Shown here one piece after another: positions 31,755 to 57,532 of a stretch of 64,000 nucleotides of DNA. The position numbers and the translations under genes were made by a program. Below the pieces are notes generated by a model. It searched no databases. It was not told where the DNA came from and saw only the letters and a list, made by a program, of their open reading frames with translations. Source of the stretch: Orbicella franksi (Eukaryota); contig OZ116699.1 of NCBI GenBank assembly GCA_964199315.1, positions 25,544,001 through 25,608,000 of the forward strand. Direction: 5' to 3'. Position 1 is the stretch's first letter; each line of letters opens with the position of its first letter.

Positions 31755-33612
31755 TCAAATATTTTGTACATTCAATTCTTGACTTGCAGTGCACGGAATA
31801 AGACGAATCTGGAGCGAGTCTTGAAGTCGCTTGTCTCCGTCATCAAACAACACGTGGTACACAGCTTTCTCATGGCAGTTATTGTTGACAGAAATCCTCT
31901 TGTGTGTCACCACACCAGGGTAATACCTGGTTCTTCCAGGCCAGAAACCAATTACACGTTGACCAGCGTGGACCTCACTGTAACATGCAGGGTGATCGAG
32001 TATTACTGCTGTCGGGTCAATCCTGTGTAAAGTGATGGTGTCTCCATCATCATAACTGATGAACACGGTCGTGGAGGTGGCACTTGTAACGAATCCGCGA
32101 TAGTATAGACCGTTTTTCCAGCGGGCAAACACTCTGGCACCCACTGGAAGTGTAAAAATGGGATATTAGTTGATGCTGGTCGCTGCAAATGGCAAGCAAA
32201 CTTTTTCAGGTCGCGTTTGACTGGCACTTAAAAAAGGCAAATTTTGGGAAAAAGATTTTGTAAAGGAAATGAAAATATTTATCGCTGAATTTGCTTTGGA
32301 CGAGCTTAGAATGCTAAATGGCTAAACTGAATATTTATGGATGCAGTGTTAGCAGATACCCTTGTGTTATCGTAGGTATGAATGGTTCCTGTGAATCATG
32401 GACAAGGGTCTGTACTGACCTTCATGAGATGACCAGTGCTCAGGAAAAATCCTTAGCTGACTGACAGCGTAATAGTCCTCGTCGTTGTCATCAAAAGTGA
32501 CTTTGAAACGGTTACCAGAATCTTTTTCAGACACGTAACCAATGAAATACGTGTTGCCTCCTTTCCATGTTGCTACCACGTGGTGTCCAATGTCTACGTC
32601 ATGAGGCACCTTATCGGGAATTACCGCTGAAATGTCCGAGACTCTGTGAATAATCGTGTCATTGTCGTCAAACGAAATATTCACCAGGCCATTTCCAATT
32701 GATAACACTTTCCCAGGGTAATAAAGGTTGTTCGTCCAACGGGCAATAATCCGATCATCAACTGTAAAGTAAAGAACGATACCAACTATAACACAGCTAG
32801 CAAGTTAAAACGCCACTTTATAAGGAGTAGCTGACAGACCTCGACTAGTACCTCGCTTTTACCCAGCAAAGATCCAGCTCAAAGCAAGGAAGACAGAAAG
32901 ATTTCGCCATTTGGATCAATATTTAGTACCCACAGTTTTACGCCAGCGTTGGAAAATTCACTTAAGCAGTTATGTCATTCGTCCTCATAGAAACTAGAAA
33001 TCTCTCCATGAAACCTTAGATACGTTCGATGAACTCGAGCAGTGAGGTCGATTTGTTTGATCAGCATACCTTCGAAGTTCGCATAACCACAATTTGTCAT
33101 ATACTTCCTCCAAAGGAAATACCAAAGTCGCCAGCCTAAGAAGCATCCTGGTTTTATATACAGTCAACTTTACAAGACGGACACGTGGTTCTGGTCCCTG
33201 CCGCTTTTCCGTCATTTTACTGTGACTGAATTCCCTATAAGACGGACATCTCTCTAAGACGGACAACGGACACTTTGAAACCGTCAAAGAACATTCTAGA
33301 AGTGCTTTTCCCCGTGAAAAATTCTTCAGTACGGAAACGTATAAACTCAGTGTTACAGCAAATTACAATTTGAGGAGCCAAAATGCTTTTCCTAAGACAA
33401 AAAGATGACAAACATGTGTGCGCTATCAAATTTTCATTTAGTTATCTTTTCCCATTTATACGATTTGGTGATGACAATACAAATTATACTAAAAAAAGCT
33501 GCATGCATCAAGCAAATGCCTAAAATAAAAAATAAACCCACTTACCATTAAACGCATTCGAAAGTGCAGAAACGCTTAAAGCAAAGTAAAGGACCAACAG
33601 AACCTGCTTCAT
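31755..33612 (-). CDS. Secreted protein with four Tudor-like repeats, 287 aa, copy 2 (intact)
   Basis: Exons 33612-33546 (MKQVLLVLYFALSVSALSNAFN, preceded by caaccATG), 33135-33070, 32761-32420, 32143-31755; all phase-1 GT-AG, 864 nt. Repeats: IIARWTNNLYYPGKV..SFDDND; VVATWKGGNTYFIGYV..TFDDND; VFARWKNGLYYRGFV..SYDDGD; VIGFWPGRTRYYPGVV..LFDDGD. Confidence 0.85.
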
Positions 33613-34187
33613 GGTTGTGAATGTTGCCTGTGTAAAGGAGCAAGGAGCCAGAGTGCGTCAGAGCATAATCCATACAGGAAACTGTAAAACTAAATAGTGG
33701 AATTGTGCCAAACATGTCATATGCGACCGACAAGTTAGGAGATTTCATTTCACATTAACGGATGCAAAACAAAAGAACCGTTAAGTAGATTGTGAAACAT
33801 ATCAGATGTAAATTGATCCACAACACTTCAACAGCGGGGCAAGGGTGACCTCAATTTTAGAAAGCGAAAAGTGGAAAGGAAAAATATAAACACCACAAGG
33901 CCAGTGTGAGCTAGCTCCCAAGTTCTTAATATTCCTTTTAGGAATGTGGGGTATTTTTCGCTAGTATTTTGGTACGCGCTAGCTTTTAGAATGCACAGGT
34001 CGTATTCGACGTATTCATATGCCAAATTTCTGTTACTCAAACCACAAGTTATATTATGTTACCTCTCTAAATAGCCTGTTAGTCATTTCCTGTACGGTAA
34101 AAAAGCATCCTTCGATGAATAAAGAACTCCTGTTTCACTTAGCTTGTTAGCATGTAGGAATCTTGGCACGGGAAATTGTGGTTAAGC

Positions 34188-34599
34188 CCCGGGCAGGGGG
34201 CGGGGGTGAAGGGGGCGCTGCCATATATGGGCTATATAGGTATGTGCCGCTGTGAAGGGTATGGTTTTCAAGCAGTTTACTCTAGGATAGGGTATATAAG
34301 TCAGAGCATTTGGGTCTAGAATAGGGTATCATTTTCCACAAAACTGACTGGTTGGTTGAAGATTTTATCTAGAGTAAGGAAACCAGGGATTGCCACTCAA
34401 AAATATAAAAAATTAAATCGGCAAGTTTAAATTTACGCAAATCAGCCTCAACAGTGTGATAGATGGGATGCTTTTGGGAGTTTACTCTAGTATAGGTTAG
34501 CAAAATTCAGCTGAGCTAGCTCTGGTATAGGCTAAGGGTTCCAGGGTCCCAGCGGCACATCCCCACCCAGAAATTCCCAAAGTACCCCCCCCCCCGGAA
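34188..34599 (+). mobile_element. ~410-bp non-autonomous DNA transposon with 8-bp TSD (hAT-like), copy 1
   Basis: TSD ggttaagc (34180-34187, 34600-34607); C/G-run termini; near-identical to 56051-56460. Confidence 0.8.
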
Positions 34600-35531
34600 G
34601 GTTAAGCCCAATGCATGTTTATGCTTTGGTTCACAGGATACTGAGGATATGACATAGTGTTAGCGCATCAAGAAATTGCCAGTAGCAAGCTAGTTTAAGT
34701 CAGTTACACACAAGCCTTCGCACCAGCAGTTGTTCTGAAGCAAGCAATTTTCAAGTCAAGTCTTAGTTGACCTCAAGTCCTTGTTACTTTCACCCTTTTT
34801 TGCTTTACGTAGTAAATTTGTTTGTTATCAAATTGCATTTTGTCTGTAGTTTACATAACAACACCGAATCTAACCTGGTCACACCAGCTTACACCAATTT
34901 TCAACAGAGAGCGAAACAAAATATAACGGTAACAAACACAGTAATGAAAACCGGCTTCCTTTATAAAAACAGACTGCAAAAGAATTGGACATAAAAATCA
35001 TAGCGCACGTTTAAGTCAATTTAGTGAACAGAAAACAAAGTGAACATAAAGTATACGTACATACAAAAAGTAAATCACTGCCTTCCTAATGCCTTCGTCG
35101 ATTCTGGCCATTTTTGCTCCATACAGTGCAGCTTCTTCCTTTAGTCGGTGTTGCTCTTCTGGCCGTAGTGTGCAAACACAGACTCAAATCAAAACAGCTT
35201 CGCGAGAAATGGTCACTGAAGTCAAAGACCCACAGTACTGGCTTATTGATTGATTAGTTTAGTCACTAATTTTATTTTATGGTCTGTTTTCATAAGTCAT
35301 TCGTCTTGAATTCTTAAAAGACTGACAAGTGAAATGTCAAAAAATGATTAATAACTAGGACTAATTTGCGATGCGGTCATGTTTTTAGTAGGACAGAGAA
35401 AAAATGTTTTTGCCTGGTTATCAGCAAGTAACTAGTACTCATTTGCAACACTCCACAGACATATAAGAAAGCACGAGGACTCTATCAAAAGGTGCCTTTG
35501 CCTTCTTAACACGGTATGTACTTAAAATTCC

Positions 35532-38500
35532 TTATTGTTCTTCATGCATTTGCCTTGCCTCTGTAATTGCTTTGGTTATCAGTTTCAAATTGTCCTTTGT
35601 CATTTCTCTAAGCACATCTAAGTCTTCCTTTATCTTCTTTACCAGGTTAGCGCATGCGAGCGTTTGTCTGTACCTTTCCCTATCTACCTTACGCAGGACG
35701 TCTTCGCCTTCTTTTTCAACATCTAAACCTGCCAGCTTTGTGAATTCTGTTTGAGTATCATTAAACAAATCTTCAAATTCCCTAAAATTGGCTAGGATAT
35801 TATCTCTCAGTCTTCGAAATTGCACTGTTGAGTCTTTTAGATCACGGTTGATGACCGCCATCTTGCCATCGCTTGCTGCAGCGTATGACTGCTTGCTCTT
35901 AGCGTTACTCGATACGACGTCCATCTGACCAAGAATCTCCACCCCTTCACTGCCAGCTGAAGTCATCTAATAAAATAACGGGAAAATGGAACGCAACATT
36001 GTGAGTGTTTTTGTAACTGCTTCAAATGAGTCTCTTGTCTAGGTTTCGCAAGACTTTTTGCCTCTGTATGAACTGTTTTCTACAAAATAATGCGATAGGA
36101 TGTCGAGTGCACATGATCACTTCAATAGCCAACCCTCCTAAGAAAGATAGAAACCCGGTAAATTGGACAAAATGGTTTCGTAAATTTAGATTAAGCTGAG
36201 AAAAGGTGGTCCCTAAAAGCTTCTTTTCAAAGAATAAACAACCAATGCAGAAAGCAAGCAAGGAACTCCTGACCCGGTTGGCTAGCATTCGAAAAACATT
36301 TCTAGTTGATTCTATTGTAGCTTCATTTTGAATTCTCCTGATTCTTTTTGGTGTGAACCAAGTGACCAACGCTGTCATTATTTTTGGTATCTTGTGTTAA
36401 AATGTAAAGTACATAAGAGGGTTTATTAGGCATCACAAACTCGCTTCAGCCTGGTTATCGACAAATCTCTACTGACAAGCAATTCCACGGACTCGTTATA
36501 AATACGCCTTGAGAAGTCTACTGTGAGAAGGGTCATTCGCGTATTTTTCAGCGAATACACATCACATTTTACCCTGAAATCCTTACCTTGGCTAACACTT
36601 GAACTCCGTGTTGACCCATCCCTACGTAAGGGTAAAGTTGTTTTGTTGTTTTGTCACACTCTATCAGCAACTCTTTATCTGTCACCTGGTCTCCATTCAA
36701 GCAAAATACAACTGGTACCTTGCCGTTAGATTCCATTTCGAACTTAAGAATGCAACCAATCAGATCACCTCGATTCACCACAGGAACTAAAGGAAGAGAA
36801 CAGAGAGCAAGAAACTCTCAACAACGACAACAATGGACAAGTAACCAAATTATCATCTTTACTGGTGTTATATTTTTATGCCCCATTTATTGATCACTGA
36901 TTTGTAGTATGCTATTTTAGATTTTCCACTAGATTGACCCATGGATACATAATAAATGGAACCAACTAAATGTGATATAACCGAATACCTATGGTTGGCT
37001 GGGCTCATTGACAATCTCAGATATTGATTGACACAATTTAGTGGACTACGTTTGATTGTTGGCGCAACGAAAATGCTAACGAGTGAAGCTGTATATAGGT
37101 ACTTAACAGAAGATGGATGGATTCCTCTATTTCGCTACGTGGAAAATTTTACCGTACCTTCAATTAATCTGCGTGTTGTTAAGTCTTCATTTCCGCCATC
37201 GACAATATTTCCATCCGCGTGATAGGCCACGCTACCAGTATAGCATCCAGGTCTCAAATGAAAATCGTATCCCTTTCGCACCACGCCGACTTCGAGAAAC
37301 CTGTTTCTACCAGTTTCTAGGACTAGAACCTAAGGTGGTAAGGAAGCCACAAGACACAAGCCAAGTTAAACGAGAGTACTCAGTGAGAAAATCAAACAAA
37401 CACCGAACAAAACACACAAAAAGTATTTTCATTCCTACCTCAAAGTGTGGGAAGTCCTTGGAGAACGGAAAAACGTATCTGGCACCATGATGCAATAGTG
37501 ATGCTGTTGATTGTGGAGAAGTCTCACAAACCTCACAACTTTTGACTCCCTCGTACAGGAGAAGGCAGTCCCTCACCTTTACACCCATGCTATGCCACGC
37601 CTGTAATGATGTAAACAAAAAAAAGTTACCAAACAGGAAAAACATGTTTCTAGTACAATGCAGTCTGCTTTGACATTAAGCAAAACCCGATGCTACCTTT
37701 TGGCCTGTCGCTAGAATATCTTGGCGAGCCAGGAATGCTCTCTGCGCAGTTTGATTGGCAATTCGACGATTACCCTCAGCTTCCAAAAACAACTGGTCCA
37801 TCTTCCCTTCCTCTATAAAAAACAAACAAAAGAGAAAACTTTCTGTGGCTAGATATAATTCATTTCACACAACGCAGTTCATTTTATTTAGGTATATTTG
37901 AAAAGACGAGAGGACATTTGTAATTGTTTAAAGCAGATGTCGGTTTTGTCACGTTCTTCTGCTTATATTTCTTCTGTAAAATTTAATTGACACTATGTCT
38001 TTGGGCCACTACATTAAGGACCACATTAACAAAAAATGAAAAAAGAGCTGTCCAACACAGATAAAACTCCATCCACATCTAAAATATAATCGTCATTAAC
38101 AGCAAAAACTAGGTGTTATCTCCTCGTTGTACCTACCTGTTTGAGGAAACGAAAAGCCATAAGCTGCAAAATAACTAGTTTGAAGCTTTTCAATAACTTC
38201 ATCCAGCTCTTTAGTCTGGAAGAAATGAGAAAAGCGACAATAGTAGGTCTCTAACACGCATCCCTCTTCTTCGTCGATAAGAACTACGGTAAGAAATTAC
38301 CCTAAAAGCACATTGGTAAAGACGACCTAGACCTAGAATTCTACGTTTCAAGAAATTGACACGATCAATTTACTTTCTGTAAAAAAAGAACAGAAAAGCA
38401 TCAAGAAAAAAGACCCTTGCAGAATACGCAGATAAATGGTCAGAGCAGCTTATATTTTAAGAGATAGAAATGCTGTGATCATTTCAATCTATAAGATATA

Positions 38501-41500
38501 CAAGTCAGAATCGCCGGGCACGCTAAAAACTTACGTGCCGTACAGCAGAAGTCGGGATGTCTGGATGTCCTTTGCAGCACCTTCTACATTTCTTCCACAA
38601 CCACCAAACCCCCATAACAAGACTGGACACAAGGTTTAGTGGCACAGGTATTGGATCATACGAGCTGTACGTCTGGATTGTGATGGCTTTCTTGAACTTC
38701 CATTCCATTAAAGAATTGTCCTTAAAATAGCCAGCAAGTACTATAGTGTAAGCTCAAGACAGTTGACAAACTTCGATATTTTCACAGATCACTGTTTTTT
38801 CAAATAAATCTTACAAACTCAGTAAATGAAATACATTAAAAAATCTAAAATAAATCACATTTCATCTGACTGAATTGAACAAGAAAGAACCAAACAACAA
38901 TACAACTGCTTTAAACCAAATTGGAAACCTGAATAACGTTCGACTCAGTGTCATGTCCAGGGACTTTGAGTTCCGTAATTTTTAAGAGCTGTATTCGAAG
39001 TCTGCCGCTATTGGTGACCTGAACTACCTTTAAGAGTACTTTCAGACACTAATTGGCCCTCTGTTATCTTGATATAGTTAACTGGAATCAATCATGTTAA
39101 TCACTAGTTTAGACCTGCGAGCAGGCTATTTATAGGCACGCCACTAACACTGACGAAACGAATGCAACAAACAAACATAACATGGCTATAAATCTGAAGG
39201 AACACCAGCTGGTTATTTACAAAGCGTCATCAAGGAGTTGATCCCGGTGGAGGTCTTGTAAGCGCTACAAATCACTGTCCCATGCTAACTCCACAATAAG
39301 CATTGAAGCAAAGCAGGAACTGAAAGTTTCTTACTTCCACACGCTGGTAAGTGTTGGATAAAAGAGCTATCATCATGTTAACAAGAAGAATGACACCCAC
39401 GACCAGGAAAATACCATACAACAAGTGAGCAAGCGTCACCGTCGCACTGTCAACTGATTCAAGCGTCTCCAGTTCCGCTATTCCAAGCAACGACCAGCAG
39501 AGGTGTTTTACCACGGTCCACCAGCTGAGAGGAGACACCAAAAGACAGAAGGTGAACTCACTTTTGTGACTATAATCAGTGTAAAAAAGTGGAGGTAAAC
39601 GAGGATAGAAGAGCAATTATTGCCTGACTTACCAAGTTTTTAAAAAAAACAACAACAAAAAAACAACACATTCATTTAATCATAGCAACACTTACATGAC
39701 TCAAACTTATATTATATGTCATTACTTACAATTTTCTTAGGTCTGAATTTATAAAGATGTTAAAGGCAAAAGTGTCTTTTTTTTTTAGCATTTTTCAAAA
39801 AAAAAAAATTCATTTTAAATACGAAAACTTCCAATTTCAGTCGGAGCCCTGTAAGACCCGACTTCACTCCACTGTGACCACCTCACACCTCTCCCTGACT
39901 TACCAGGTTGGTCCAGACGTACTGCACACCCTAAAAAAAAGGAAGTACTTGAATCAGTAAATCACAAATTCATGTTCTCTGTTATAGCTAGTCAATTTGC
40001 CAGGCAGTGATAAAATATATCGCTTTTGTTCTTAAGTCGCTTCTAACATTTTCAGGGCTCTTTCACCTACCCGCCTGTCAGTTGCTTTTACCTATACGGT
40101 TGCTTTCCAACTTTGCCTCAGCACCACGTGACAAGGAAAAGCTTCATATAATTGAACAGCTAAAACCTGTAAGAAGTCAGGTTCTAAACTTCTTACAAGT
40201 CTTAGCTGTTTTAACTTGAACTCAGGTCAAAACCCGACTTCTTACAATAGAAGTAAATGCTAATTGATGTTAAGCCGTAGAAATGTAAAATGTCAGTAGT
40301 CTACACAGTTAACACTTTGAGTGCCATTTACCAATTTTTAACCAATCTTTTGCATTCGCTTGCTATTACCTGCCAGTCTTGCTTCTGGTATGACGTTAAA
40401 GAAATGATCTCCTTTAACATACCTAACATAAAAAAATACACTTACGGGATACCATCATATTTTTCTGTGATAAACGACTTCTCCGACATGTACACTTTCG
40501 TGATTGCGAACGAGAAGGCGATGACAATCGCGACAAACTGCCAAAATATCGTTGCAATGTCTCTGATGATACTGAACAAGGCGATTTGAATGGTTCCAAG
40601 CCCTTTTACTGTCTCCATCAGCTGACCAAATACTCTGAAAGTGAGGATCATAGTATTGAGGCCATACAAGTAGCCAGCTATGACAAGGGATCGATTGTTT
40701 ACCACGAATTTGGATGAAGACCACGTGACCATTCTCAGCAGAAACGTGCAGGTGTAGACGAACATAGTGATAAGGTCCAAACAGTTCCAGGTATCTCTGA
40801 TGTGAGAAGGTGAGAAAGATTTAGTAGATGCAATATGTCAAGTCTAACTGCAGAGTTAACCGAAAAGACCCTACTACACATAGTTACAAACGATTATTCC
40901 GTTAGTGTTAATTAATTAAGGTAATTATTATCGGAAATACATTCAAAACTAAATCATGAGGAAAATTATGGTTTATAACCCCCTAAGCCCAGACATCTAT
41001 TGGCTTTTCATCATTCTTTTTTCTGAAAACCAAATACAAACGGAGCTTATTTAACCTTGCTTGCTTCTTATTACAACTGGCTCTCATCGGGGGTGTTTTG
41101 TATTGGGCCAAATAATTAGGTCAGTGAATGGCTTTTAGAAAACGTATCACAATAATATAGAACATTTAGATGTAATCAACTTACTTTGTGTTAATTTGTT
41201 AGCAGCATTTGACTTAAACATAGGGCTATCGGAAACTGTTCTACCTCTCGCAGTTATTCAAAGTGAATACCATTTACCTGGTGAACTTCTTCAATTTCTT
41301 TAAAGCAATAATCGCTACGTTTTTACAAGGAGAAGCACACTTCTTTACACGCTTGACTTCAACTTTGTTATCCTTTTGCTTCTCACTTTGATGATGGAGT
41401 TCATCTAGCTCTGTGAGCAAGTCGTCAATCTCTTCCTGGTTGGCGTCTTTCAAGTCAAAGATTTTAATTTTATCTTTATTTCCTTGTCCCACTTGCACCT

Positions 41501-44500
41501 TTATTACGCAGAATTGCTTAATTTCCATCACCATTCGGCCCACGAAGAAGATCAGGATAGCCCACTCTTGTTCGCTGAATTCAACGCTTGTTGGACTGAG
41601 ACAAATGGACAAATGGAGTCCAAGTAAGGCCAGATAACTCAACGTGTCACGGATAAATAGGAAGTAAGGTGTAGTGAAATATTCTCGATACGTCTCTGTG
41701 GAAATAAAATACGAACACACACAAAAAGGCGCGACTGAATTCTTATTACAACGCCCAAGGCCTTATGAGTCCTATGAAGCCAAGGACGGATGGATAACCA
41801 TAAAGCACCATGAATCAGCGATAATTCCGCTACAAACGATATCTATTTGGTCAACCACCTTTTCAAACTAAGCTTAGTCGTTGACTGGCGCAGCGGAAAA
41901 TCTTCTTTGGCATAGGATAGTGTTAGGTAGCTATGTTCACAAATGTCAAGATGCTGACAAAAGAAATCTGTCTGAAGTTCAAACGTGACAGACTTTATCT
42001 AGGTGTCTTTTATGTTATAAATGTACGCAATAAGTTTTTTAACATGGCAATTTTACTATAAATTGTGATCGAAACGACTCTCAAAGCCGTTTTAACTTTG
42101 GGTAAAAATAAGAAATAGAAACTTACCATAAAGGTCGATTTTACATCGTTCTGCGATGAAAAACAAAAATTCTTTAAGTTTGTCTAGCCACACGACCAGT
42201 ATCGCAGGAATGCCTAACAACAGCTTGGTTTGCTACAAAATAACCCCATGTTTTCCAACTCGCGGCTCTTACTTGCTGCAGAGGACCCAGCTGACGCAAA
42301 GCAATAGAGAATAAAAGGACAAAAAAACGAGGAAAACAATGAAAACAATAGGTTTGTGAGGCGCAATCTATTGTGACGTGTTCTTTGTCTTCTACATCAA
42401 GAAGGAGCCCAACTCATTGCCAGTCTTGGGTGTCAAGGTTTGCCTCAAAGGCTAGCACTTATGGCCGAACAAGAATGAGTTCAAAGAAAGCGATATCTCC
42501 TCTAGCCATCTTCGCTCGTCAAGAATACATGCACAAGAAACCATGGTTTTGCTGCAGATTTGGCGTCATCAACGCATTCTCTTTCAAATGATATCTCAGT
42601 TCTTCGACATTATTCTCAGAAGCAATTTCCTGAAACATTCTCTACTTATGTACAAATGTATTGAAAAAAAAAAAAATCTAATGTAAAACAAACTCCAACC
42701 TGAATAAGCCTTGTTTATTTACTATGGAGAGTGTTATTGAGAGACCAAAGAAAAAGTAAGACAACTGGTTGTTCCTGTTTACCATTAACAACGTTTATTG
42801 ATTGTTTTAAAGTAGTTTGAAATCTGGAGTTCAAAAATTACCTGTACTGTTACTCCACTTTGCCCTCCCAAGGTGGATAAGGTAAAGGACAATGAAAACA
42901 ATTGGAAATAGCACCAAATCAAACAAACACCATAAGTCAAGAAACATCCATTTCCACCGTCCAATGCTGAGATAAGATGGCGTCCACATTTCACCAAGTT
43001 CACCATACCACTTGTCATTGTTAAGATTATCAATTACTGGATGGGTGAAAAACTGGAAAGTAACAATAAATAGAAAATGTTTAGTAACTGGAAGAATGCT
43101 GCGCGCGTTCGGCTTCCCGTCCAGGGTCACATGCATAAAATGTTTGATTTTTGCAGATTGTAGGTTGCAGAGTGCATCTACAGTACTGTAGATGCATCTC
43201 TGAGATGCATAAACAGATGCATCTACAGCACTACGAGTGAGCAAGACTGTTTTGGAGCCAAATATTAAGAAATTATATTTTAAAGAAAGCTTAGTTTTGG
43301 CAAGCCAAGGTTAATTAACAAGAGTGGAACTCTCAATTCTTGAATGAACGCCTCTTTCGTTTTCCTTGGAAACGTTTCTTTCTAGAATCTTTCTTCGGAC
43401 GCTCACGTGTGTACATGTCTGTGTCGTTCTTGCGACCTTAGCTTATACTTCCCCTAGATAGATCCACGGTTAGCTGTCGCTAAAGATTATAATATTTTTT
43501 CTAGTTGGTTAATCTCGGCTTGAATTATCAAGTCAGCTGCGTTCGTTTAGGATTTACATCTGAATACTTTGTTTTGTGCCACCTGATTTACCTTTGGCTT
43601 GAGTCCCGGGCGTAACTAGAGTTAGCATAAAAGTGAGTTCATTGGAAAGTTGTATTAAGCAGAGGAAGTAAGCATAGTGGAAGACGTAGAAGTCCCGAAG
43701 AATAAAGATTAAGTCTCAGAGTCTCGATACCTCTCGTTGGTCAGTCGTTAGTCTCCTACAAAACTATTGTCATAAGATGCCAGTCGCAAGTCAATTCAAT
43801 TCCCCTCCAGTCTTTCAAGCATGGGTTCCCCTTGGGCACACTTACCCATACGTGTCCAACGGGTGAAGAGGGACATTAAGAGTCAAGCGTATTGCCCCAG
43901 CAGACTACTTTTGGATTGTTATAACGAATCAATAGGTTCCACGCATAGCTCACTTTCTAAGGTAACAAAAAGACGATTTGTAATCACCGACCTTCTTTTG
44001 CCCAAGCTCAATAGCAGTTTCCATGACTTCATCAAAGCACTGCTTGAACTGTAAACGGCACTTTATGTCAGATTTTAAGGGGTTCATCAGACAGTTAGTG
44101 AATTCCTCCACAGAGGACGCTAATTTTTCCTCATCTTCAAAGTTTGGTAACCTCCTGTCCGCCAAAGAGCGAAGTTCGTAACTCACCTTGGTGTTAAAAA
44201 CAATAACAAATGAAAAATCTTTAATTTTTGTAGAGAAACACTTACTTACCCAACTGAAGTGCTATTATTACCGTCGAGCTTCTAAAAATAAAGTTAACCT
44301 TTGTGTTACTCTTAAATAACTGACAGAACATACTGTCTTTTTTCGATTAGCTTCGATTAAAGCTCATGCGTTGGGGTTAAGGTAACACTTTTATTTATTT
44401 ATTTATTTACTTATTGATCGATTCATTTATTTACAACACTTTCGAATCACAATTATCGCCTGCCTGACAATCAGCAAGATGAAATCTTTATTCACTAACA

Positions 44501-45786
44501 CTTTCACCATCACTGCTTTTCAAATTCAGTAGGTAATAAAACAAAAAGGCACAGACACGGTTGGGATTAAGATAGTTTTGTGGAGTTGAAATGAAGCGTA
44601 AAGTTACCGCAGATTACATGCAGCATGATTGAACTAAAATCATCCCAGTAACTATACTAGCCTAATTGTATGAGCTTTGATAGGAGCTTTCAGAATTGTT
44701 TAGACTTGAGCTTCGTAGTTTATTGGTTGTTTGGATAGTCATCGAGTGAGTCTTGTGATTCAAATACCCGCAAGCCGCACATATAGTTTTTTCCTCCAAG
44801 TTATTTGCCTTCGCGCGTTAATAATTCTTTACCCTAGAACAACTGCTTGCATTGGTGGTCATGTTTGCGTTGTCTAATGTCTTTTTCCTGTTTAGGCGTT
44901 GATTCTCGAAGGGTGAACATTTTATTAGTAAGTCCTATTCATTTGCGGGAGTCGCATGAAAGTGTCTGGGTTAGTGTCCTGTAAAGATGTTGAATCCACC
45001 AAAGTCAGTCGTCCGATATAACCAAACATGCCTACTTCAAAGAGGGTATGCATTTGCTAGTCAATCCGAAAGATTATTGTGCAAGTCAGAAGACGTAATC
45101 CAGCAAATAAAACTAGATTCTTGTTTCCTCTCGTAACTTACATCGAGCGCTCAAAAAGTTATACAAAAGTCTTACCAATGATGTCTTGATTTTGGTATGA
45201 GATAATGCACTGGTTTTCAGTTCTGGATCAAAGAGGAGTTGTGAGAATATGATGGACTCACCAGCATTGACATCTGCATAGCGTTCTTCTCGCATTTTGT
45301 AAATGCCTTTGGTGTGATTTTCTCACTGATTTCAAGGAAGTTGCCTTTCCTTATGGTCTTTATCAGCGACTCCTCGAAAGCTGGGTAGACATCAGTCAAA
45401 TGTAAGAGGTTATAAATGAATACTGATATATTTGATACATAAGGTTTTCAGAAGTTATTTCTACCATGGTTTGGAGGATAATTCCTATCTCAAGCCTCGC
45501 GTACACATTTAGGAACAAACATAGTGTTAAAAGAAGAAAAAAAGTAAGGTACATGTTGTTGAAGAGGTCTTATTAAGTAATTGGACCTTTTGAACCGAAA
45601 TACCAACTTTGCCGGATTGGTAATAATGCATCACCAAGAAAAGAAAATTAGCAATGTTAAAAGCGCTGCTCTGCTACTACCTCTCTTTTTTGGCCTTTCA
45701 CTTTCACTTTCGCTGCACGTTGTATCGCCGTCTTGTCCATTGCCGGCGAGACTCTCACATTCTACCTCAATGTCTGAAGCAGTCAT
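35532..45786 (-). CDS. TRP cation channel (TRPC/TRPM-like core, no ankyrin repeats) fused to a C-terminal SPRY domain and coiled coil, ~1002 aa
   Basis: Exons (minus): 45786-45681, 45380-45262, 44186-43992, 43052-42842, 42290-42273, 42150-42127, 41695-41278, 40796-40446, 39930-39904, 39524-39335, 38720-38535, 38215-38137, 37812-37697, 37600-37439, 37329-37158, 36786-36587, 35966-35532; GT-AG, phases compatible, 3009 nt. S3 DTWNCLD, pore LCWSLLG, S6 LVNMMIALLSNTY, TRP box EWKFKKA, SPRY FEVLVLETG..EVGVV..PGCYTGSVAYHADG..GDLIGC..LYPYVGM. Confidence 0.9.
43159..43760 (+). mobile_element. Possible solo LTR in a TRP intron
   Basis: ~600 bp bounded by tgtagg..cctaca (TG..CA inverted ends) with AATAAA at ~43701; no matching TSD found. 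Confidence 0.3.
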
Positions 45787-47984: not shown

Positions 47985-48019
47985 CATAGTTAGTGGAGGG
48001 GTCCCCTCCACTAACTATG
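47985..48019. mobile_element. 35-bp perfect hairpin flanked by a 7-bp direct repeat (TIR-only element or footprint)
   Basis: catagttagtggagggg-t-cccctccactaactatg, flanked by cccaagc (47978-47984, 48020-48026). Confidence 0.7.
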
Positions 48020-48129
48020 CCCAAGCCAAGTCACGCCGAAAGTTAGCGAAACGACAGTGTAACGCAAGAAAACGTAACGGCTTGTTATCTCGTGATCTGA
48101 AATCCACGTTGCTTTAAAAGCAGTTAGTA

Positions 48130-49547
48130 GGAATCTAAACAGTTAGTAGGAATCTTATCAACGGATATGTCAAAGGCCTTCGATTCCATGCACCAGCTGT
48201 GTTGCTGAGTAAACTAGCATACGGTTTTGAAGAGAATTTCATCAATTTGTTGCGCTCCTATTTATGCAAATGACTACAACAGAGTGAAGCTGGCATCTCA
48301 AAAAAGGTTCTTGGAAATGAGTTCACCAAGGCTGCCCCCAGGGATTAGCGTTGGGACCGTTATTGTGAAATATTTTTCAAAAAGTCAACAGAATCTAAGC
48401 AAAGGCTGATGACCAGCAGCTTTTCTAAATTAGCGATAACGTTGTGACGATTAATGACAACCTAAATGCGAGCGCAACGATAGCCTCTTTATGGTACGAG
48501 TCGAACTTACTTAAGGGGAGCCTCTCCAAATACCATACCATGTTAATCAACAATAAACAGAGGGACAGGAGAGACGAGATTCGCGTAAATGTATAAGGAA
48601 CTGACATTGAATCTCTGAACAGTATTAAGTTATTAGGTGCCACTATTGACAACAAGCTTAATTTCAGTGAGCACATAAATATCACGAGCAAGAAAGCGAA
48701 CCAGAGGATAGGTGTATTAACGAGACTCAAGAACTTAGTGCCCACCGTTGCGAAACTACACCTTTTTAAGGCTGCGATTCTTCCGTACCTCACCTATTGC
48801 CATCTTACCTGGCATTTCCGCCGAGCAAGTGACAAGAGAAAACTCGAACGCACCCAGGAGAGGAGTTTGCGTGCAGTCTTCAGAGATAGTAAATCTACAT
48901 ATGAGCAACTACTGCAGAAAGCTAACTTAAAAACTCTTTATGAAAGAAGGCTACAGGACTTAGCTTGTATGGTGTTCAAAGTCAGGCATGATCTGTGCCC
49001 CCCGTCCCCTTCCTCCCGAGCGTCAAAAATTTGTTCTCATTGAAAAGTTCTACTTACAACCTTAGAGGCGCAGATTTCCACATTCCCAGATTTAATACTA
49101 TCACCGATGGGAAAAACTCCCTCAGATATATCGGACCTATGCTGATCATGAGAGTAACTGGACAGCCATCGACTCCTGGCCCCAGTTGCAAACAAGCTAA
49201 CTTCTCATTAGTGAAAAAAATCGACTCTCAACTAACTTAAAAAAACTTACCGTCCCTGCAATCTTTCAAAAGACAGATCTGCTTAACTAACTTTTCGTCC
49301 AAGATAAAACACGAGTGCGAGAACTCTGTCTTAAGTAGTACATGACCACCAAGCTTGTTTCGTGAATTATTGTAAATATATAAGGTAGTTAAATTTTAGT
49401 TTTTGTACATGGTCAAATTTTAGGTGTTTAAATTTTAATAGCTTATTTTTTTTATTTTAAGTGTCCCCTAATAGTAGAGGTTTTTTTTTTTACCCTCGGC
49501 TAGACTTCCTTGAAATAAAGTTTTTCATTCATTTCATTCATTCATTC
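48130..49547 (+). mobile_element. Degenerate L2/CR1-like LINE (RT and C-terminus)
   Basis: Frame-disrupted motifs LSTDMSKAFDS, GCPQGLALGPLL, IKLLGATIDNKLNFSEHI, KLHLFKAAILPYLTYCHLTWHF, YNLRGADFHIPRFNT; ends in a (ttca)n-type tail at ~49525-49547. Confidence 0.85.
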
Positions 49548-50674
49548 AAGGGGAGGGGAGCGCTACCATCGAAGGGGTACCGCATGTTTTCTGGATACAG
49601 AACCAAATTAAAAAAATACTGGCTGTAGAAGTAAGAAGTAGAAATATAATTATGAAATCCAGGATCAGGAAACAAACTTTGGTTCAAATGAGGAGTCCAT
49701 TATAAAGTTTTTCCCAAGAGGTTTCTTAGTTTGGTGAGCAAGTGTTGTTTTGGACCATTTTTGGCTCACTTGTAGACGAAGGCGGGCAAGCCAAACATGT
49801 AATGACACGCGTGATACGTTTTCAACGAGGAGATCCCCAGTTTTTTTTTGTATGACTTGTTTTATTGGCCCATTTTTTGCACAAAACTGACTCGACCAAG
49901 AAGTAAGAATAAACCAGTTCCTTTGTTTCCTTTATTTTCTTAAAAACAACATTTCTAAATAGTCGAAAACAACTTTCTCTACTGAAAGGTCTTACAAACG
50001 CTTCCTTTATTTTCTTGAATTAATCCACATTTCCAACATAGCTAAAATCAGTATTCTCTAGTCAAAGTTTCTATACTACATGTGTATTGATCTCAAAATT
50101 TTTATCAGGCTTCCGGGTTACAACAAAGGTGAAACACAAAACTTGCTCTAGTACACACCGGAATCTGAACACTACGGACAACTTAATTGATACATAAGGT
50201 AAGCTTATTTAGAGCATTCACTCTCATTCCACGTGTATCTGTCCTGATTTGGCAAAACTCTGCTGTGACGTTTTTGGTTTTTGTGTGAAGATTTGAAAGG
50301 GGGATTGGAAGGGGAAGGGTTGGGTTAAAGTGTGGCACTGTTCGTCGCTACCCTGTGGTTATTAGATTTAAGGCTGTTGTAAACTGAATTCTGACTGCCC
50401 TCATTGGAAGCGGTTAGCCAAGTTGCCATCCGAAACTTTTAGCTCTTTAAAACAACTTTTCCTGGAATTGAGAGCCTAAACAGGGCGCATCAGCACGAGC
50501 ACGGCCACTCTCGTTGTCAGGGTTGGAGAAAGCCGGGAACTAAAGGGACGGGAGACCGGGAGCTCTTAGAATATGAAGCATTCTTATAGTTGTCTGTAGC
50601 TAAGGTTTGGCAAATCAGGTTGAACTTATATTTCAGTAATCGTCATCCAGAGTTTCATCGACAGTTGGCTTGGT

Positions 50675-53600
50675 TTATTCGTCTGTCCCAACAGTTGAAG
50701 GGTCCATGTCTGGGGTTGTCTTGATAGAACCCTCAGCGGCATTGACTGGGTTGGTTACCACAGCTGCAGTGGTAACTGCTTTGGAATCAAACAGATTGAA
50801 AAAACTTGTGATTTATGCACATAAAAGGTGCACAATTACAAATTGTTGCAATAATGAAGTCTCGGTCTCGATATTAAAGAAAAGAAAGAAGTATCTTGCA
50901 TATTATAATTCGCTGTGTACATACCTGGGGTTGGCGGATGTGTGACTGGTGATGCACAAAGAGCTGAATAAAAAAAAAAAGGAAGCATAATTACAACGGT
51001 GTTGAAGGTAAAAATACAACAATGTCTTCTGTATATATCATTACTTCAATAAACCCCCGACAACCAGCAAAAGGACTACAAATAAACAACAAGGAATATA
51101 AGCAACAAAACACAAACAAAGAGTAAAACAAAATCATCTAATTATCACCTGCCGAAGATTTGCAGACTTGAGCTTGGTTTTTCGGCTCCACGCATGTTTC
51201 GCAGTTTTCATCACAGACATTGTAGCCAATATGGTCTTTGGACCACAATCTCAGGGCAAAATTTTCCTTGCATTTGGTGCAAGACCCACTGATTAAACAG
51301 TCCACGCACTTGCTCGATGCCTCACATTCTGTAAGGAATTCGAACAGAAAAACAAACTCATTCCACTGTCAACGAACTGTTTTGGCTTGGATTTTACTAG
51401 TAGTCAAAGTATAAGGACAAATATAGGTTCACCTGCACGGCAGCAGAAGACTAAAACACATTAAACCAGGTACAAGAAAATAATGAGAAGTGAACTGACT
51501 CGTTCTCATCTGACCCTAACTAGTGATCACCGCGGTATAAGTCGATCTGAACAGTTCATAAGCAATGAAAAAGATATGAACTGCGAATGATTGTAAGCTG
51601 AAGAAATCATTCTCGGAGTAGTGTTTGCAATTTAAGGAACGTTAAAAATGCTATGTTTGTGTTTATTTTTTCTGTTTCTTCTCATATCTCCATTCTAAGG
51701 TTAATAGTTAGGGTGAACTAACACGTTGTATCGATGCAGGCCTGCCTATAGACCTACCAATATCCCACGTGACTGAGAAACATTACAAAGAAACTAAGTT
51801 AACATTAGCCACATCACCCATACTTATTTGCAGCTCAAAGATAATCAACTTAAGAGTGGATGTCGTTGATCTCAATACCTCCTCTCTGATCACAGATGTG
51901 CGTCCCTAAGACTGGGTCCCAAACCACGCCATTTTTTTCTCCTCCCCAGCATTCACTAGCACGCACACATAAACGGCGCACGTAAATTTTTGTCAGTGCG
52001 TAGCCATCGTCGCACTTGTGACATTTATTGTTTCTACAGTCCTGACAATTGTTACAATCTGAAAGCAAAGCAATCATCAGTTTATATATAAAGAAGAAAT
52101 TAAATCATTTGAATTGTGTTATTCTTACGCATACGCCCTAGCAGTAGAGGTTACTGAAAACTACTGATACACTGTGTGACTGACGCTGGAGCCTGTGGAA
52201 AGTTTCACTTATCAAACTGGCATCTGTAGTTTTGACGTAATAAACAAATCCTTTAAAGTAATACCTGCTGTTAAAAGTATCAATCGTGATGTTTATATAT
52301 ATATATATCCAGATTATGGCAGAAAGAGGTCTGGGTGTTGAAACTTGGAACTATACAATTGCATGCGCTACACAACTGAGAAATTTTGGAGCGAGCGGAG
52401 CGGATAAAGGCAATTTGTGAACTTGTGTTTCTCGGTCCTTGCAACAATGTAGCCAAGGGTTCACTGAAACAGCAATAATCTGATGCGACTCGCACCGTGA
52501 TTTCGCACTCCTGCCACTTATCAATGGTTTAACTGAGCCACTTGCATTACTACTCACAAACAACGGAATTCGAGCGATGAGTAGAATTTTTCCCCTAGGC
52601 CAAGAACACCGGCTGGTTTACAAACAAATATTATTTATGAGGTTTCCTGTGCAGACGTTCCGTCGAACTATATGGGAGAAACTGGAAGGTGTTCACAAAC
52701 CAGAAGAAACGGACATTTTAGAAACACAACAACCGTGAGAAGGTTCAAACATTGCCACTCACGCATTGTTGAACAATCACTCTAGTGACTTTAACAACGC
52801 CCACGGAATCAACAAGGGAAATTTTCGCGCGAGGAAACATTGGAATATTGGTATACTGCAATCACAAGTGAATCAGTAACTCGAAGCTATTACCCAGGCA
52901 ATATTAATTCGGTTATGAACTCCACATTAGCATTTTATTTGGGCGCAGGTAATTTATTGTTTTTGTTTTTGTTTTTGTTGTAGTATTTTCTACTTCACAA
53001 TTTTTACCGTACATATTTCTGCGTTCGCGCTTTTTACTCACATTTGTTAGAGATTACAGACTGACAATCGAAAGCTCCAGTAATTTCAAACTATTTTAAC
53101 CAGAGAACGTTTTGTAAATTTTAATTGTGTCTTATCTTGGTTAGTTGTCCATTTTTAAACATTATATTGTACACCGAGTGGTCATACCCCTTAATCTTCA
53201 ACAAAGGCACACAGTGGAATATCTGAGTGAGAGATGCTCTCGTCTGACCTTATTACTGATTAAGGAAAGTGAGGGAAAATAACAGAGCCACTTAACGGTA
53301 CCTAATATTTTTATAGAGCAAAGTCAGTATAACTCAGCTGTTCATTTACCCTTCTGCCCTCGGTCTTTTCAGTTTTAATCAGTGGACATTCCGACATTTC
53401 AGTAGGAGTGCCACGGAGGGTCGCTATCTGAGACACACCTCGCGTTTGAACTGTTGCAATAATGAAGTCTCGGTCTCGATATTGAAACTAAATAAAGAAA
53501 GAAGCATCCTGCATTTTATAATGCGCTGTACACATACCTGGGTTCGGCGGATGCGTGGCTGGTGGTGCACAAAGAGCTGAATAAAACAGAAAAGAAAAAA

Positions 53601-56138
53601 AAGCAAGCATAATTAAAACGGTGTTGAGGCTAAAAATACAACAATGTCTTTTGTATACATCATTACATCAATATACCCCCGAAAACCAGCAAAAGGACTG
53701 CAGATAAGCAACAAACAACAAGGAATATACATGTAAGCACCCAAACACAAAAGAAGAGTTAAAAAATCATTTAATTATATATCACCTGCCGAAGACTTGC
53801 AGACTTGAGCTTGGCTTTTCGGTTCCACGCATTTTTCGCAGTTTTTGTCACAGACATTGTAGCCAATATGGCCTTTGGACCACAATCTCAGGGCAAAATT
53901 TTGCTTGCATTTGGTGCAAGACCCACTGACCAAACACTCGACGCACTTGCTCGATGCTCCACATTCTGTAAGGAATGCGAACAGAAAAAGAAATTCATTC
54001 CACTGTCAACAAACTGTTTTGGAATAGATTTTACTAGCAAGACACGTAGCACCATAAGAACAAACATAGGTTCACCTGCAAGGCAGCAAAAGACTGAAAC
54101 ACACTAAAATAGGTACAAGAGAATAACGAGAAGTGAACTGACTCGTTCTCATCTGAACCTAACTAGTGATCGCTGCGATACAAGTCGATCTGAACAGTTG
54201 TCTTCCATAAGTAATGAAAAACATATAAACCGCAAATGGTTGTATTAAAACTGAAGAAATCATTCTCGGAGTAGTTTTTGCAATTTAAGAAGCGTTAACA
54301 ATGCCGTGTTTGTGTTTAATTTTTCTGGTTCTTCTCATATCTCCATTCTAAGGTTAATAGTTAGGGTGAACTTACGCGTTGTATTGATGCAGGTCTGCCT
54401 ATAGACCTACCAATACCCCAGGTGACTGAGAAACATTACATAGAAACCAAGTTAACATCGGCCACTTCACCCATACTTATTTACAGCTCAAAGATAATCA
54501 ACTTATGAGTGGATGTCGTTGATCTCAATACCTCCTCTCTGGTCACAGATGTGCGTCCCTAAGACTGGGTCCCAAACCACGCCAGTTTTTTCTCCTCCCC
54601 AGCATTCACTAGCACGCACACATAAACGGCGCACGTAAATTTTTGTCAGTGCGTAGCCTTCGTTGCACTTGTGACATTTATTGTTTCTACAGTCCCGACA
54701 ATTGTCGCAATCTGAAAACAAAAGCAATCATCAGTTTATAGATAAAAAAGAAATCATTCGAATTTTGTTATTCTTACGCATACGCCCTAGCAATAAAGGT
54801 TACTGAACACTACTGTTACGCCGTTTGACCTACGTTGAAGCCTGTGGTAAGTTTCAGTTTTCAGACTGGCATCTGTAGTTTTGACGTAATAAACAAATAA
54901 CTTTCAGCAGTACCTGCTGTTAAAAATATCATTTCTAATGTACATCCAGATTATATGGCAGAAAGAGGTCTGGGTGTTGAGAAAGGTCACCGAGTCTTGG
55001 AACTACAGAACTTCGAAATTTTGGAGCGAGCTGAACGGATAACGGGAATTCGTCGTTTCTTTTCAACAGGCTGTCGCGCTTGCGTTTTTCCCTGTAATAA
55101 TTTAGCTAAGGGTTCACTGAACAGCCACAGTCTGATGCGACTCACTCCGTGATTTCGCAGTCCTGTCATGTATCAAATGTTTAACGGAGCCACTTACAAG
55201 GTTACTCAGAAACAATGACATTCCAGCCACGAGTAGACCTCTCAAAACCCTACGACAATAATTTTTTCCCCTACGCCAAGAACAGTTGCGGACAAACAAG
55301 TGTTGCTCATGAGGTGTCTCCGTCGAACTATAGAGAAACTGGAAGGTATTTTCAAACCAGAAAGAACGAACATATTAGAAACACAAAAAGTTATGGAAAA
55401 GGTTCAAACATTGCCACTCATGCATTACTGAACAATGCTGAACAACCACTCTATTGATTTTAACGACGCCCATGGAATCGACAAAGGAAATTTTCGCGTG
55501 AGGAAAACATTGGAATACTGGCAAACTGCAATCACAAGCGAATCAGTAACTCGAACCTATTACCCAGGTATTATTAATTGTGTTATGAACTCCACATTAG
55601 CATTTTATTTCCGTGCAAGTAATTTATTGTTCTTGTTGTTATTTTTTTCTACTTCACACGTTTTCACCGTACATATTTCCGCGTTCGCGCTTTTTACACA
55701 CATTTGCCAAAGATTACAGTCTGACAATCGAAAGTTCTAGTAATTTCAAACTGTTTTAACCAGAGAACGTCTTGAAAATTTTAAGTGTGTGTTATCCCGG
55801 TTTCCTGTCCATTTTTAAACATTATATTGCTGACCGAGTTGTCATACCCCTCAATCTTGAACAGAGGCACTCGGTGGAATATTCGACTAAGAGTTCCTCT
55901 CGTCTGACCTTATTACTGATTAAGGAATGTGAGGGAAAATAACGGAGCCTCTTAACGGCACTTAATATTTCAATAGAGTAAAGCACAACTCGGCTGTTCA
56001 TTTACTCTGCTGCGTTGGTCTTTACAGTTTTAATCAGTAGACATTTCGACCCCCGGGGGGGGAGGGGTACTGCCATATATGGGCTATATAAGTATGTGCC
56101 GCTGTCAAGGGTATGGTTTCAAAGCAGTTTACTCTAGG

Positions 56139-56177
<39 letters not shown>

Positions 56178-56367
56178 GTATCATTTTTCACAAAACTGAC
56201 TAGTTGGTTGAAGAATTTATTTAGACTAAGGAAACCAGCAATTGCCACTCAAAGATATAAAAAAATCAAATCGGCAAGTTTAAATTTACGCAAATTAGTC
56301 TCAACAGTGTCGATAGATGGGGGGATTTTGGGAGTTTACTCTAGTATAGGGTAGCAAAATTCAGCTG

Positions 56368-56398
<31 letters not shown>

Positions 56399-57046
56399 GG
56401 TCCCAGCGGCTCACCCCCACCCAGAAATTCCCAAAGTACTCCGGCCCCCCCCCCCCCGGGATTTCGACATTTTAGTTCGAGCCCCACGGGGGGCGCGATC
56501 TCGGACATACGTCGCGTTTGAATTTTGCCAGTGCAAGAGAAAGAAATTTTTGTGGTAGCCACAATGTCTTGTCTTATCTTGTCTTGTAAGGCAAATGCAT
56601 TTCACAACGATTAAAATCGGACTTCATAAACATAATGATAGTCGGGTCAGGGATTTGTTCCGTAAAAATCACACAGCGCCATGATCAGTGCTTCAAGTGG
56701 TACACATCACTTACAAATCGCCACGATAAAACGTGCTTGAGAAAAACGGTTCAATTAAGATTACAAATCAAGAGACAAGAAAAAAAAAGAAACACTTATA
56801 GGAAATAGAGTTCTGTTCAAGGGTGTAGCGAACTACTTCTAGCTTTCAGGAAACTTTCGGAGATAACAGATTAAGCCTTTCAAATTGGTACGAAAATAGT
56901 CTGCCAACGTGACCTCACAAATTACACTAAACAAATTACAAACTGTCTCTACAGATAAGAGAAATGAGATAAAACTTACCGTTGAATGGATACGAAAGTG
57001 CAGGGACAAGAAAGACTAAACTGAGAAGAAACACAACGGTCTTCAT
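50675..57046 (-). CDS. Secreted cysteine-rich protein with furin-like (FU) repeats, ~322 aa, with an internal 3-exon duplication
   Basis: Exons 57046-56980 (MKTVVFLLSLVFLVPALSYPFN), 54711-54532, 53965-53786, 53576-53538, 52058-51879, 51328-51149, 50963-50925, 50778-50675 (T/P-rich tail, TAA); all phase-1 GT-AG, 969 nt; CxxC-x4/5-CxxC modules. Confidence 0.82.
52600..53095 (+). mobile_element. Penelope-like 3' fragment (GIY-YIG end), intronic
   Basis: Degenerate NYMGETGRCSQTRRNGH..SNIATHALLNNH..KGNFRAR; duplicated at ~55280-55740, so it predates the intragenic duplication. Confidence 0.7.
55280..55740 (+). mobile_element. Penelope-like 3' fragment (GIY-YIG end), intronic, second copy
   Basis: ORFs 55215-55457 and 55435-55740: ETGRYFQTRKNEHIRNTKSYGKGSNIATHALLNN, DFNDAHGIDKGNFRVRKTLEYW. 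Confidence 0.75.
56051..56460 (+). mobile_element. ~410-bp non-autonomous DNA transposon with 8-bp TSD (hAT-like), copy 2
   Basis: TSD atttcgac (56043-56050, 56461-56468); the paralogous intron has the empty site ggacattccgacatt (~53385-53399). Confidence 0.85.
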
Positions 57047-57532
57047 AGCTGGGTCGTCGCCAATGAGAAAGCAGGACTTATTGCGTGCAAAGGAAACAAA
57101 CACCAGTCAATTGATCTGAGCATAAGTCTGCGCGTGAAACCAGTTAAAAAGGATCAAATACCGGATGTTTCTTTAAAAAGATACGTTTGATTTTAGATCT
57201 AATTTCTTGTCACTGCGCCAAAGCCAAGATATCCTGGAGTATATTCTAGCCTCGTATATTGAGGGTGGCAAAGGTGGGGTACCAATCACGCATCACGCTG
57301 AATTTTTTTTTATTAAATTACGCATCACGGAGAATTTTTTTCCACAAATCACGCGACACGTAAAAAGAAGAAAGCAAATCGACAATTTTACTTTCTTGAC
57401 CCTAAAAGTGTCGTTAAAAGAAGAACTTTGCCGTTTCAACCACAAAAATGCCTCGGCAAATATGTGACCTCTCACGCGAAAACGTTCCTTACGGCATCCG
57501 TTGGAACGGCTGAACGCACGGCAAGTGAACTA

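Follow-up and report, generated by a model that had tools for sequence, protein, structure and literature searches.

Probable paralogy between the signal-peptide exons of two unrelated secreted-protein genes in the stony coral Orbicella franksi

Three genes on the minus strand of a 64,000-nucleotide (nt) stretch of the Orbicella franksi genome (the window; C2:25,544,001-25,608,000 of a 497-Mb stony-coral assembly) start with a coding exon of the same design. T1 and T2 are copies 1 and 2 of a gene for a Tudor-like protein, and F is a gene for a cysteine-rich protein. Comparison of their sequences indicates that the leader exons of T and F are probably old paralogous signal-peptide exons, and we infer common descent rather than convergence as the source of their likeness. 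The mature regions that follow these leaders are unrelated in sequence, as an earlier note on this DNA had claimed: that of T is Tudor-like, and that of F contains no Tudor-like sequence.

The first coding exons of T2, T1 and F are each 67 nt long and consist of 22 codons plus a G, ending in phase 1. The T2 leader exon (33546-33612, minus strand), as read from the sequence, encodes MKQVLLVLYFALSVSALSNAFN + G and is followed by the donor GTAAGT; gene models of Montipora capricornis and Oculina patagonica join this type of leader to VDDRIIARW. The T1 leader exon (25054-25120, minus strand) encodes MKQVLLVLYFVSIVFALSNPFN + G, and the GT of its donor is changed to GA (GGAAAGT). Exon 1 of F (56980-57155, minus strand), defined by a splice joint in RNA reads and by the metatranscriptome contig L049, is composed of a 5' untranslated region (UTR) of at least 109 nt and the 67-nt leader (coding sequence 57046-56980), which encodes MKTVVFLLSLVFLVPALSYPFN + G in front of a GTAAGT donor. 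The length, the phase and, in the intact genes, the donor were found as the earlier note had described them. A script count showed that the T2 and F leaders share 42 of 67 nt without gaps, with 19 identical positions among the last 25 nt, GCACTTTCG included, and 10 of 22 amino acids (aa); this recount agrees with the values given earlier. The T1 and F leaders share 43/67 nt and 12/22 aa. As the criterion for a signal peptide of the endoplasmic reticulum (ER) we used a basic residue by the N-terminal Met, a hydrophobic core 7-15 residues long and a small residue at each of the positions -3 and -1. By inspection, the leaders have these features (MK, a 13-residue L/V/F core and A-L-S), and we regard all three as ordinary signal peptides of the ER type. 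Cleavage likely takes place after A-L-S, which would leave a mature N-terminus of the form N/Y-[AP]-F-N. The phase 1 that had been claimed for all downstream exons was upheld by the RNA joints and the mRNA contig of F and by the T2 model.

To place the leader similarity on a scale, we compared it with three null distributions. The first consisted of 134 open reading frames (ORFs) that start with ATG and contain a hydrophobic core; they came from a total of 353 kb of DNA of Orbicella franksi and of loci of other corals. The best identity of these to any of 12 Tudor-family leaders averaged 4.9 of 22 residues (standard deviation 1.1, maximum 8), and their identity to the T type alone averaged 3.5 (maximum 7). 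The second, 37 real hydrophobic N-termini of other proteins, also reached a maximum of 8. Thus, none of the 171 signal-like N-termini exceeded 8/22, while the observed values were 10-12 for the F of the window, 11 for that of a third coral and 10 for that of Oculina. In the third, F leaders were shuffled in a way that left M and K unchanged and preserved what residues the hydrophobic and the C-terminal region were each composed of, a comparison with shuffled signal peptides that the earlier note had proposed. This gave p = 0.0009 for the F of the window and 0.0025 and 0.005 for the other two of the three F orthologues, whose leaders are not independent of one another. On these surrogate nulls, the similarity between the T and F leaders is very probably well above chance.

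The same exon design was found in other corals. The F orthologue of Oculina patagonica (ACROYT_G006820; P0212) has the leader MRTVVLAFSLAFLVPALSLPAS, in an exon of exactly 67 nt followed by GTAAGT, and the F genes of the third coral (L055-L057), which are 84-85% identical in exon A, have MKAVLLLLSVAFFIATLSLAFK + G, again 67 nt and GTAAGT, with two extra codons in the leaders of L055 and L056. The Oculina T orthologue has the leader MKQGLLVLCFIFSVSALSNPFH, also 67 nt with GTAAGT, and other Tudor subfamilies have leaders of like build, such as MKRSLFILSLAFLVSAISVAARVR in P0157 and one ending in SSSPFE in P0174. Different F orthologues have kept different T-like residues: the F of the window has ALS.PFN, the F of the third coral has MKAVLLLL...LS.AFK, which matches MK.VLL.L of T, and the Oculina F has SLAFLVPALS, to be compared with SLAFLVSAIS in the Tudor paralogue P0157. 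This pattern is expected if the leaders share a common ancestor. In the identity matrix (out of 22), F against the T type gave 7-11, F against the P0157 type 9-11, T against the P0157 type 9-11, and the F orthologues among themselves 9-14. The F leaders are thus as near to the T and P0157 types as those types are to each other, and fall inside the leader diversity of the Tudor family. This result suggests that the leader passed from the Tudor family to F and not in the opposite direction. Between the window and Oculina, the T leader is conserved in 16/22 residues and the whole T protein is 77% identical, and the F leader is conserved in 14/22 residues with 69% identity in the aligned region. 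The leaders, at 64-73%, are therefore not better conserved than the mature parts, at about 69-77%.

The gene order around the two leaders is the same in Orbicella franksi and Oculina. In the window, F is followed by a TRP-type channel gene (35532-45786, minus strand; context only), by T2 and T1 and, further on, by a Cys-loop receptor gene. In Oculina (CM126636.1, ~29.49-29.54 Mb), F (G006820), a 1004-aa Ion_trans/YVC1_C channel, T (G006818) and a Cys-loop receptor lie in this order on one strand. Because both leader lineages and their linkage are present in Oculina, they predate the split of these two coral lineages. The two leaders appear to have evolved separately since then, without detectable gene conversion, as a quartet count over the 67 sites gave 10 sites for the split between T and F, 2 for grouping within species and 2 for the control.

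These observations are best explained by a single ancient event. An ancestral Tudor-family leader exon, together with its phase-1 intron, would have been copied locally before the deep split of the two main stony-coral lineages, and the copy would have come to head a gene of unrelated, cysteine-rich phase 1-1 exons. Afterwards, the two leaders would have diverged separately while both stayed 67 nt long and the genes stayed two genes apart.

The search for further carriers of the leader covered the whole genome. With blastn, none of the leaders matched anything but T1, T2 and F; the pattern GCNYTNWSNNNNNCNTTYAAYGGTRAG found only T2 and F; and a profile of the three leaders matched only the leaders themselves, plus one match at E = 0.74. 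The nucleotide pattern ATGAAR-N30-51-ALS-xx-F-x-GGT gave 21 matches, compared with 6 in a reversed control, and only T2 and F were both open and hydrophobic. One pattern match, MKLSAWGQMFRMALSNDFNG at C2:5190345, was considered as a further leader and rejected, as it is not signal-like. The earlier note had proposed a genome search for an M-K...A-L-S leader and had counted a lack of further family members against its own reading; T2 and F were the only open, hydrophobic matches, and no further members were found. It had also proposed a comparison of the upstream DNA, and when the 400-nt flanks on either side of the T and F exons were aligned, no similarity was found. A dispersed element resembling a miniature inverted-repeat transposable element (MITE), ~385 nt long with G-run and C-run ends, lies near both leaders (34203-34590 and 56055-56440; copies ~90% identical), and no Rfam family was found for it. 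The repeat that this element gives rise to near both leaders (34203-34417 and 56055-56269) was rejected as a shared flank because it is dispersed and not collinear with the exons. RNA contig depth on the copy in intron 1 of F runs into the thousands, a value to which many copies in the genome presumably contribute.

We weighed the common descent of the leaders against chance or generic constraint, by which two unrelated signal peptides would come to look alike through M-K, a Leu/Val/Phe core, A-x-S and the usual phase-1 intron near codon 20. A number of points favor this explanation and count against paralogy. The case as a whole depends on only about 22 residues, in a kind of peptide that is short, biased in composition and generically endowed with M, K and A-x-S. 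The null sets were composed of pseudo-signal ORFs and of real N-termini in a small, mixed collection rather than of curated signal-peptide exons of the genome, and the pair was chosen for looking similar out of a very large scan, so that the nominal p-values overstate the significance. At the DNA level, F and T of different species (33-36/67) are as alike as the orthologues Fo and Fx (36/67), and DNA identity therefore has little resolving power. The same codon is used for 5 of the 9 shared non-Met residues, against about 3 expected by a rough estimate, which makes the codon argument weak. A phase-1 intron at the signal-peptide cleavage site is usual, and over-represented, in animal secreted-protein genes (PMC1626468), and the position of the intron phase alone is therefore not distinctive. 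The unlike flanks and the genome-wide lack of further members point the same way. On the other hand, chance has to account for 10-12 shared residues where none of 171 signal-like N-termini exceeded 8, and for composition-preserving shuffles with p ~0.001. After M, K, A16 and S18 are dropped, T1 and F still match in 8 of 18 positions, and the matches P-F-N lie behind the cleavage site, where signal peptidase does not need them. In addition, the length of 67 nt was kept in both lineages, and the two genes are still linked. Taken together, these data make a chance resemblance unlikely. Recent gene conversion between neighbors, which would keep the leaders alike by concerted evolution, is suggested by the A-L-S codons: T and F of one species use the same three, but the window has GCA CTT TCG where Oculina has GCC CTT TCA. 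Across all 67 sites, however, the 10:2:2 quartet count shows no within-species excess, and one of the two within-species sites is a CpG, prone to parallel decay. Gene conversion was rejected on this count and seems to us extremely improbable.

The leader could also be a specialised cassette for sorting or co-expression that directs both proteins into a single secretory pathway or cell type, like the conserved leaders of toxin and skin-peptide families. In conserved-leader superfamilies of this kind, such as the conotoxin gene superfamilies and the 'secretory cassette' of frog preprodermaseptins, members are numerous, the leader is conserved far more strongly than the mature peptide, and there is a propeptide that carries processing sites. 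T and F resemble them in having related signal sequences in front of mature parts without sequence similarity. The conservation of the leaders between distant corals, about like that of the mature domains, is in line with a cassette, since signal peptides are typically less conserved; the linkage is conserved as well, and words of both genes occur in the same whole-colony RNA runs (X1, X2, X3 and X12). However, the leader is found on two gene families only, its upstream sequence is not shared, and whole-colony RNA is uninformative on cell type. Moreover, there is no propeptide or dibasic site after the leader, which is followed directly by VDDRIIARW in T or DCDNC in F. The likeness to toxin families that the earlier note had drawn was consequently not borne out, given that further carriers, a better conserved leader and a propeptide or dibasic site were all absent, and we regard a sorting cassette as highly unlikely. 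A related idea is that the leader has been kept at 64-73% identity since the deep split of stony corals as part of a conserved, co-regulated block, consisting of the Cys-rich protein, the TRP channel, the secreted Tudor protein and the Cys-loop receptor, in one secretory or sensory cell type. We give this idea little credence; if it is true, the shared leader would route both secreted products alike.

Paralogy of the two leaders can be set beside the known cases of class 1-1 exon shuffling in Patthy's modular extracellular proteins (PMC8001218, PMC1626468). As in these, the leader exon ends in phase 1 near the cleavage site, and every exon downstream of it is of the symmetric class 1-1. This phase 1-1 architecture behind the leader permits exon shuffling, and an in-frame tandem duplication in F (described below) is the same principle at work. 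Unlike Patthy-type shuffling, the shared part here is the leader exon and not the mature domain, and only one transfer is seen. The earlier note had spoken of a shuffled secretion-leader module. What stands of this is a pair of probably related exons joined through a phase-1 intron to unrelated 1-1 mature parts; what does not stand is that the module is reusable, as the genome-wide searches gave no further carrier.

The T2 gene was modeled with three exons (33612-33546, 32761-32420 and 32143-31755) that encode 265 aa, both introns being in phase 1. Exon 2 (32420-32761, minus strand; 342 nt, phase 1-1), which is supported by the model and by orthologues, encodes two Tudor-like domains. The coding part of exon 3 (31755-32143, minus strand), which is supported also by the RNA-run contig L062, encodes two more and ends with the stop codon. 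L062 spans the junction of exons 2 and 3 and starts inside intron 1, part of which it retains. The junction of exons 1 and 2 in Orbicella franksi is inferred from canonical splice sites, the reading frame and orthologous models. The contig extends ~2.3 kb past the stop codon (29484-31755), indicating a long 3'UTR that reaches to about 29484. T2 is 87.5% identical to Montipora capricornis P0158 and 77% identical to Oculina patagonica XP_078359533 (P0159). The T exons score above the Pfam cut-offs for BAHCC1-like_Tudor, DUF4537 and Tudor_2/3/5; for exon 3, the bit scores (cut-offs) are 45.9 (28) for BAHCC1-like_Tudor, 39.6 (27) for DUF4537 and 40.5 (31) for Tudor_5. T1 lies within an 8.49-kb tandem duplicate. 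Beyond the leader, both of its coding exons (24274-23933 and 23655-23252) are still open; they would give a product of 270 aa, 88% identical to T2, but the donor of intron 1 has GA. Between T1 and T2, at 25708-26145, the window contains a reverse-transcriptase fragment with a weak RVT_1 match.

T1 and T2 are members of a cnidarian family of secreted proteins with four Tudor-like domains (DUF4537 / BAHCC1-like Tudor), with which F shares the leader type only. Orthologues or paralogues occur in Montipora, in Oculina and in Paramuricea, an octocoral; almost all of them start with a short leader ending in phase 1, after which comes V-[DNG]-[DE]-R. The closest paralogues in Orbicella franksi are three genes in tandem (C2:23,503,900-23,555,800; L026, L036 and L037) that are 66% identical in exon 3. 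They use another first exon of 37 codons plus G in phase 1, MSRFGASFAAVICVVVILAGQSTGLHQWRPILYPNFR (MSRFGASF...), and the transcript-derived proteins P0161 and P0163 confirm this 37-codon leader. Therefore, not every Tudor gene has a leader of the T type. At least six kinds of leader occur in the secreted Tudor-like family. The long-leader paralogues lie ~2.1 Mb away in both Orbicella franksi and Oculina. A search of 1.84 billion representatives found 566 relatives of T, many with 10-25 repeats. Signal-peptide or lipoprotein-like N-termini were also seen on DUF4537-type repeat proteins that look bacterial (e.g. P0041, P0062, P0064 and P0085), and the Tudor-like fold may be used outside the cell well beyond the cnidarians. 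In the literature we found nothing directly relevant on secreted coral Tudor proteins or on a 'secretory cassette'.

The structure of F was established from RNA. Raw polyA RNA reads (X24) and contigs of other RNA runs showed the GT..AG joints 56980/54711, 54532/53965, 53786/53576, 53538/52058 and 51879/51328, with reads continuing from position 51149 into another small exon. The joint of the leader to exon 2 (56980/54711) was seen in 21 raw X24 reads and in one X6 contig. Independently, L049 is a full-length spliced F mRNA in eight genomic blocks (57155-56980, 54711-54532, 53965-53786, 53576-53538, 52058-51879, 51328-51149, 50963-50925 and 50778-49582). Seven further exons, all on the minus strand, are thus spliced to the leader, and the internal ones are 180/180/39/180/180/39 nt long and all phase 1-1. 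Exon 2 (54532-54711) encodes unit A1 with 8 Cys, exon 3 (53786-53965) unit B1 with 9 Cys, and exon 4 (53538-53576) the Pro/Thr-rich linker C1 with one Cys. Exons 5 (51879-52058) and 6 (51149-51328) encode units A2 and B2, and exon 7 (50925-50963), known from L049, encodes linker C2. The last exon (49582-50778), also from L049, encodes a Thr/Pro/Ala-rich tail, with a stop codon that ends at 50675 and ~1.1 kb of 3'UTR. The 322-aa product consists of the leader, two sets of A (60 aa), B (60 aa) and C (13 aa), and the tail; no transmembrane stretch was found in it. Of the two A-B-C sets, which together span window 50925-54711, the second arose by a tandem duplication of 2.65 kb and is 87-92% identical to the first, and both are present in one mRNA. 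The Oculina F, a 206-aa protein, has a single A-B set. F has thus grown by doubling, in frame, a unit of three exons (180 + 180 + 39 nt), and Oculina does not share this doubling.

The mature part of F had been called a furin repeat in the earlier note, a label we were unable to confirm. The full 322-aa product matched no Pfam family at E <= 1, a PDB sequence search returned 0 matches, and the AlphaFold model of the F unit is of low confidence (predicted local distance difference test score, pLDDT, 38.9). F is like the furin-like and VSP-type CxxC repeats (PF15913 and PF03302) in its CxxC-rich spacing, with beta-hairpins predicted within the first 30 residues, and the language-model and structure look-ups (Atlas) that pointed to these repeats are weak leads only.

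The finding adds an example to a known evolutionary mechanism; it reveals neither a secretion system of a new kind nor a gene family like those of toxins. For T and F, two secreted coral proteins that had been unannotated, the analysis yields correct gene models; their products, splicing and linkage have been preserved in two distant stony corals. If the leaders are paralogous, as is probable, they would provide a clean, datable example of a secretion leader and its phase-1 intron being reused to export an unrelated domain.

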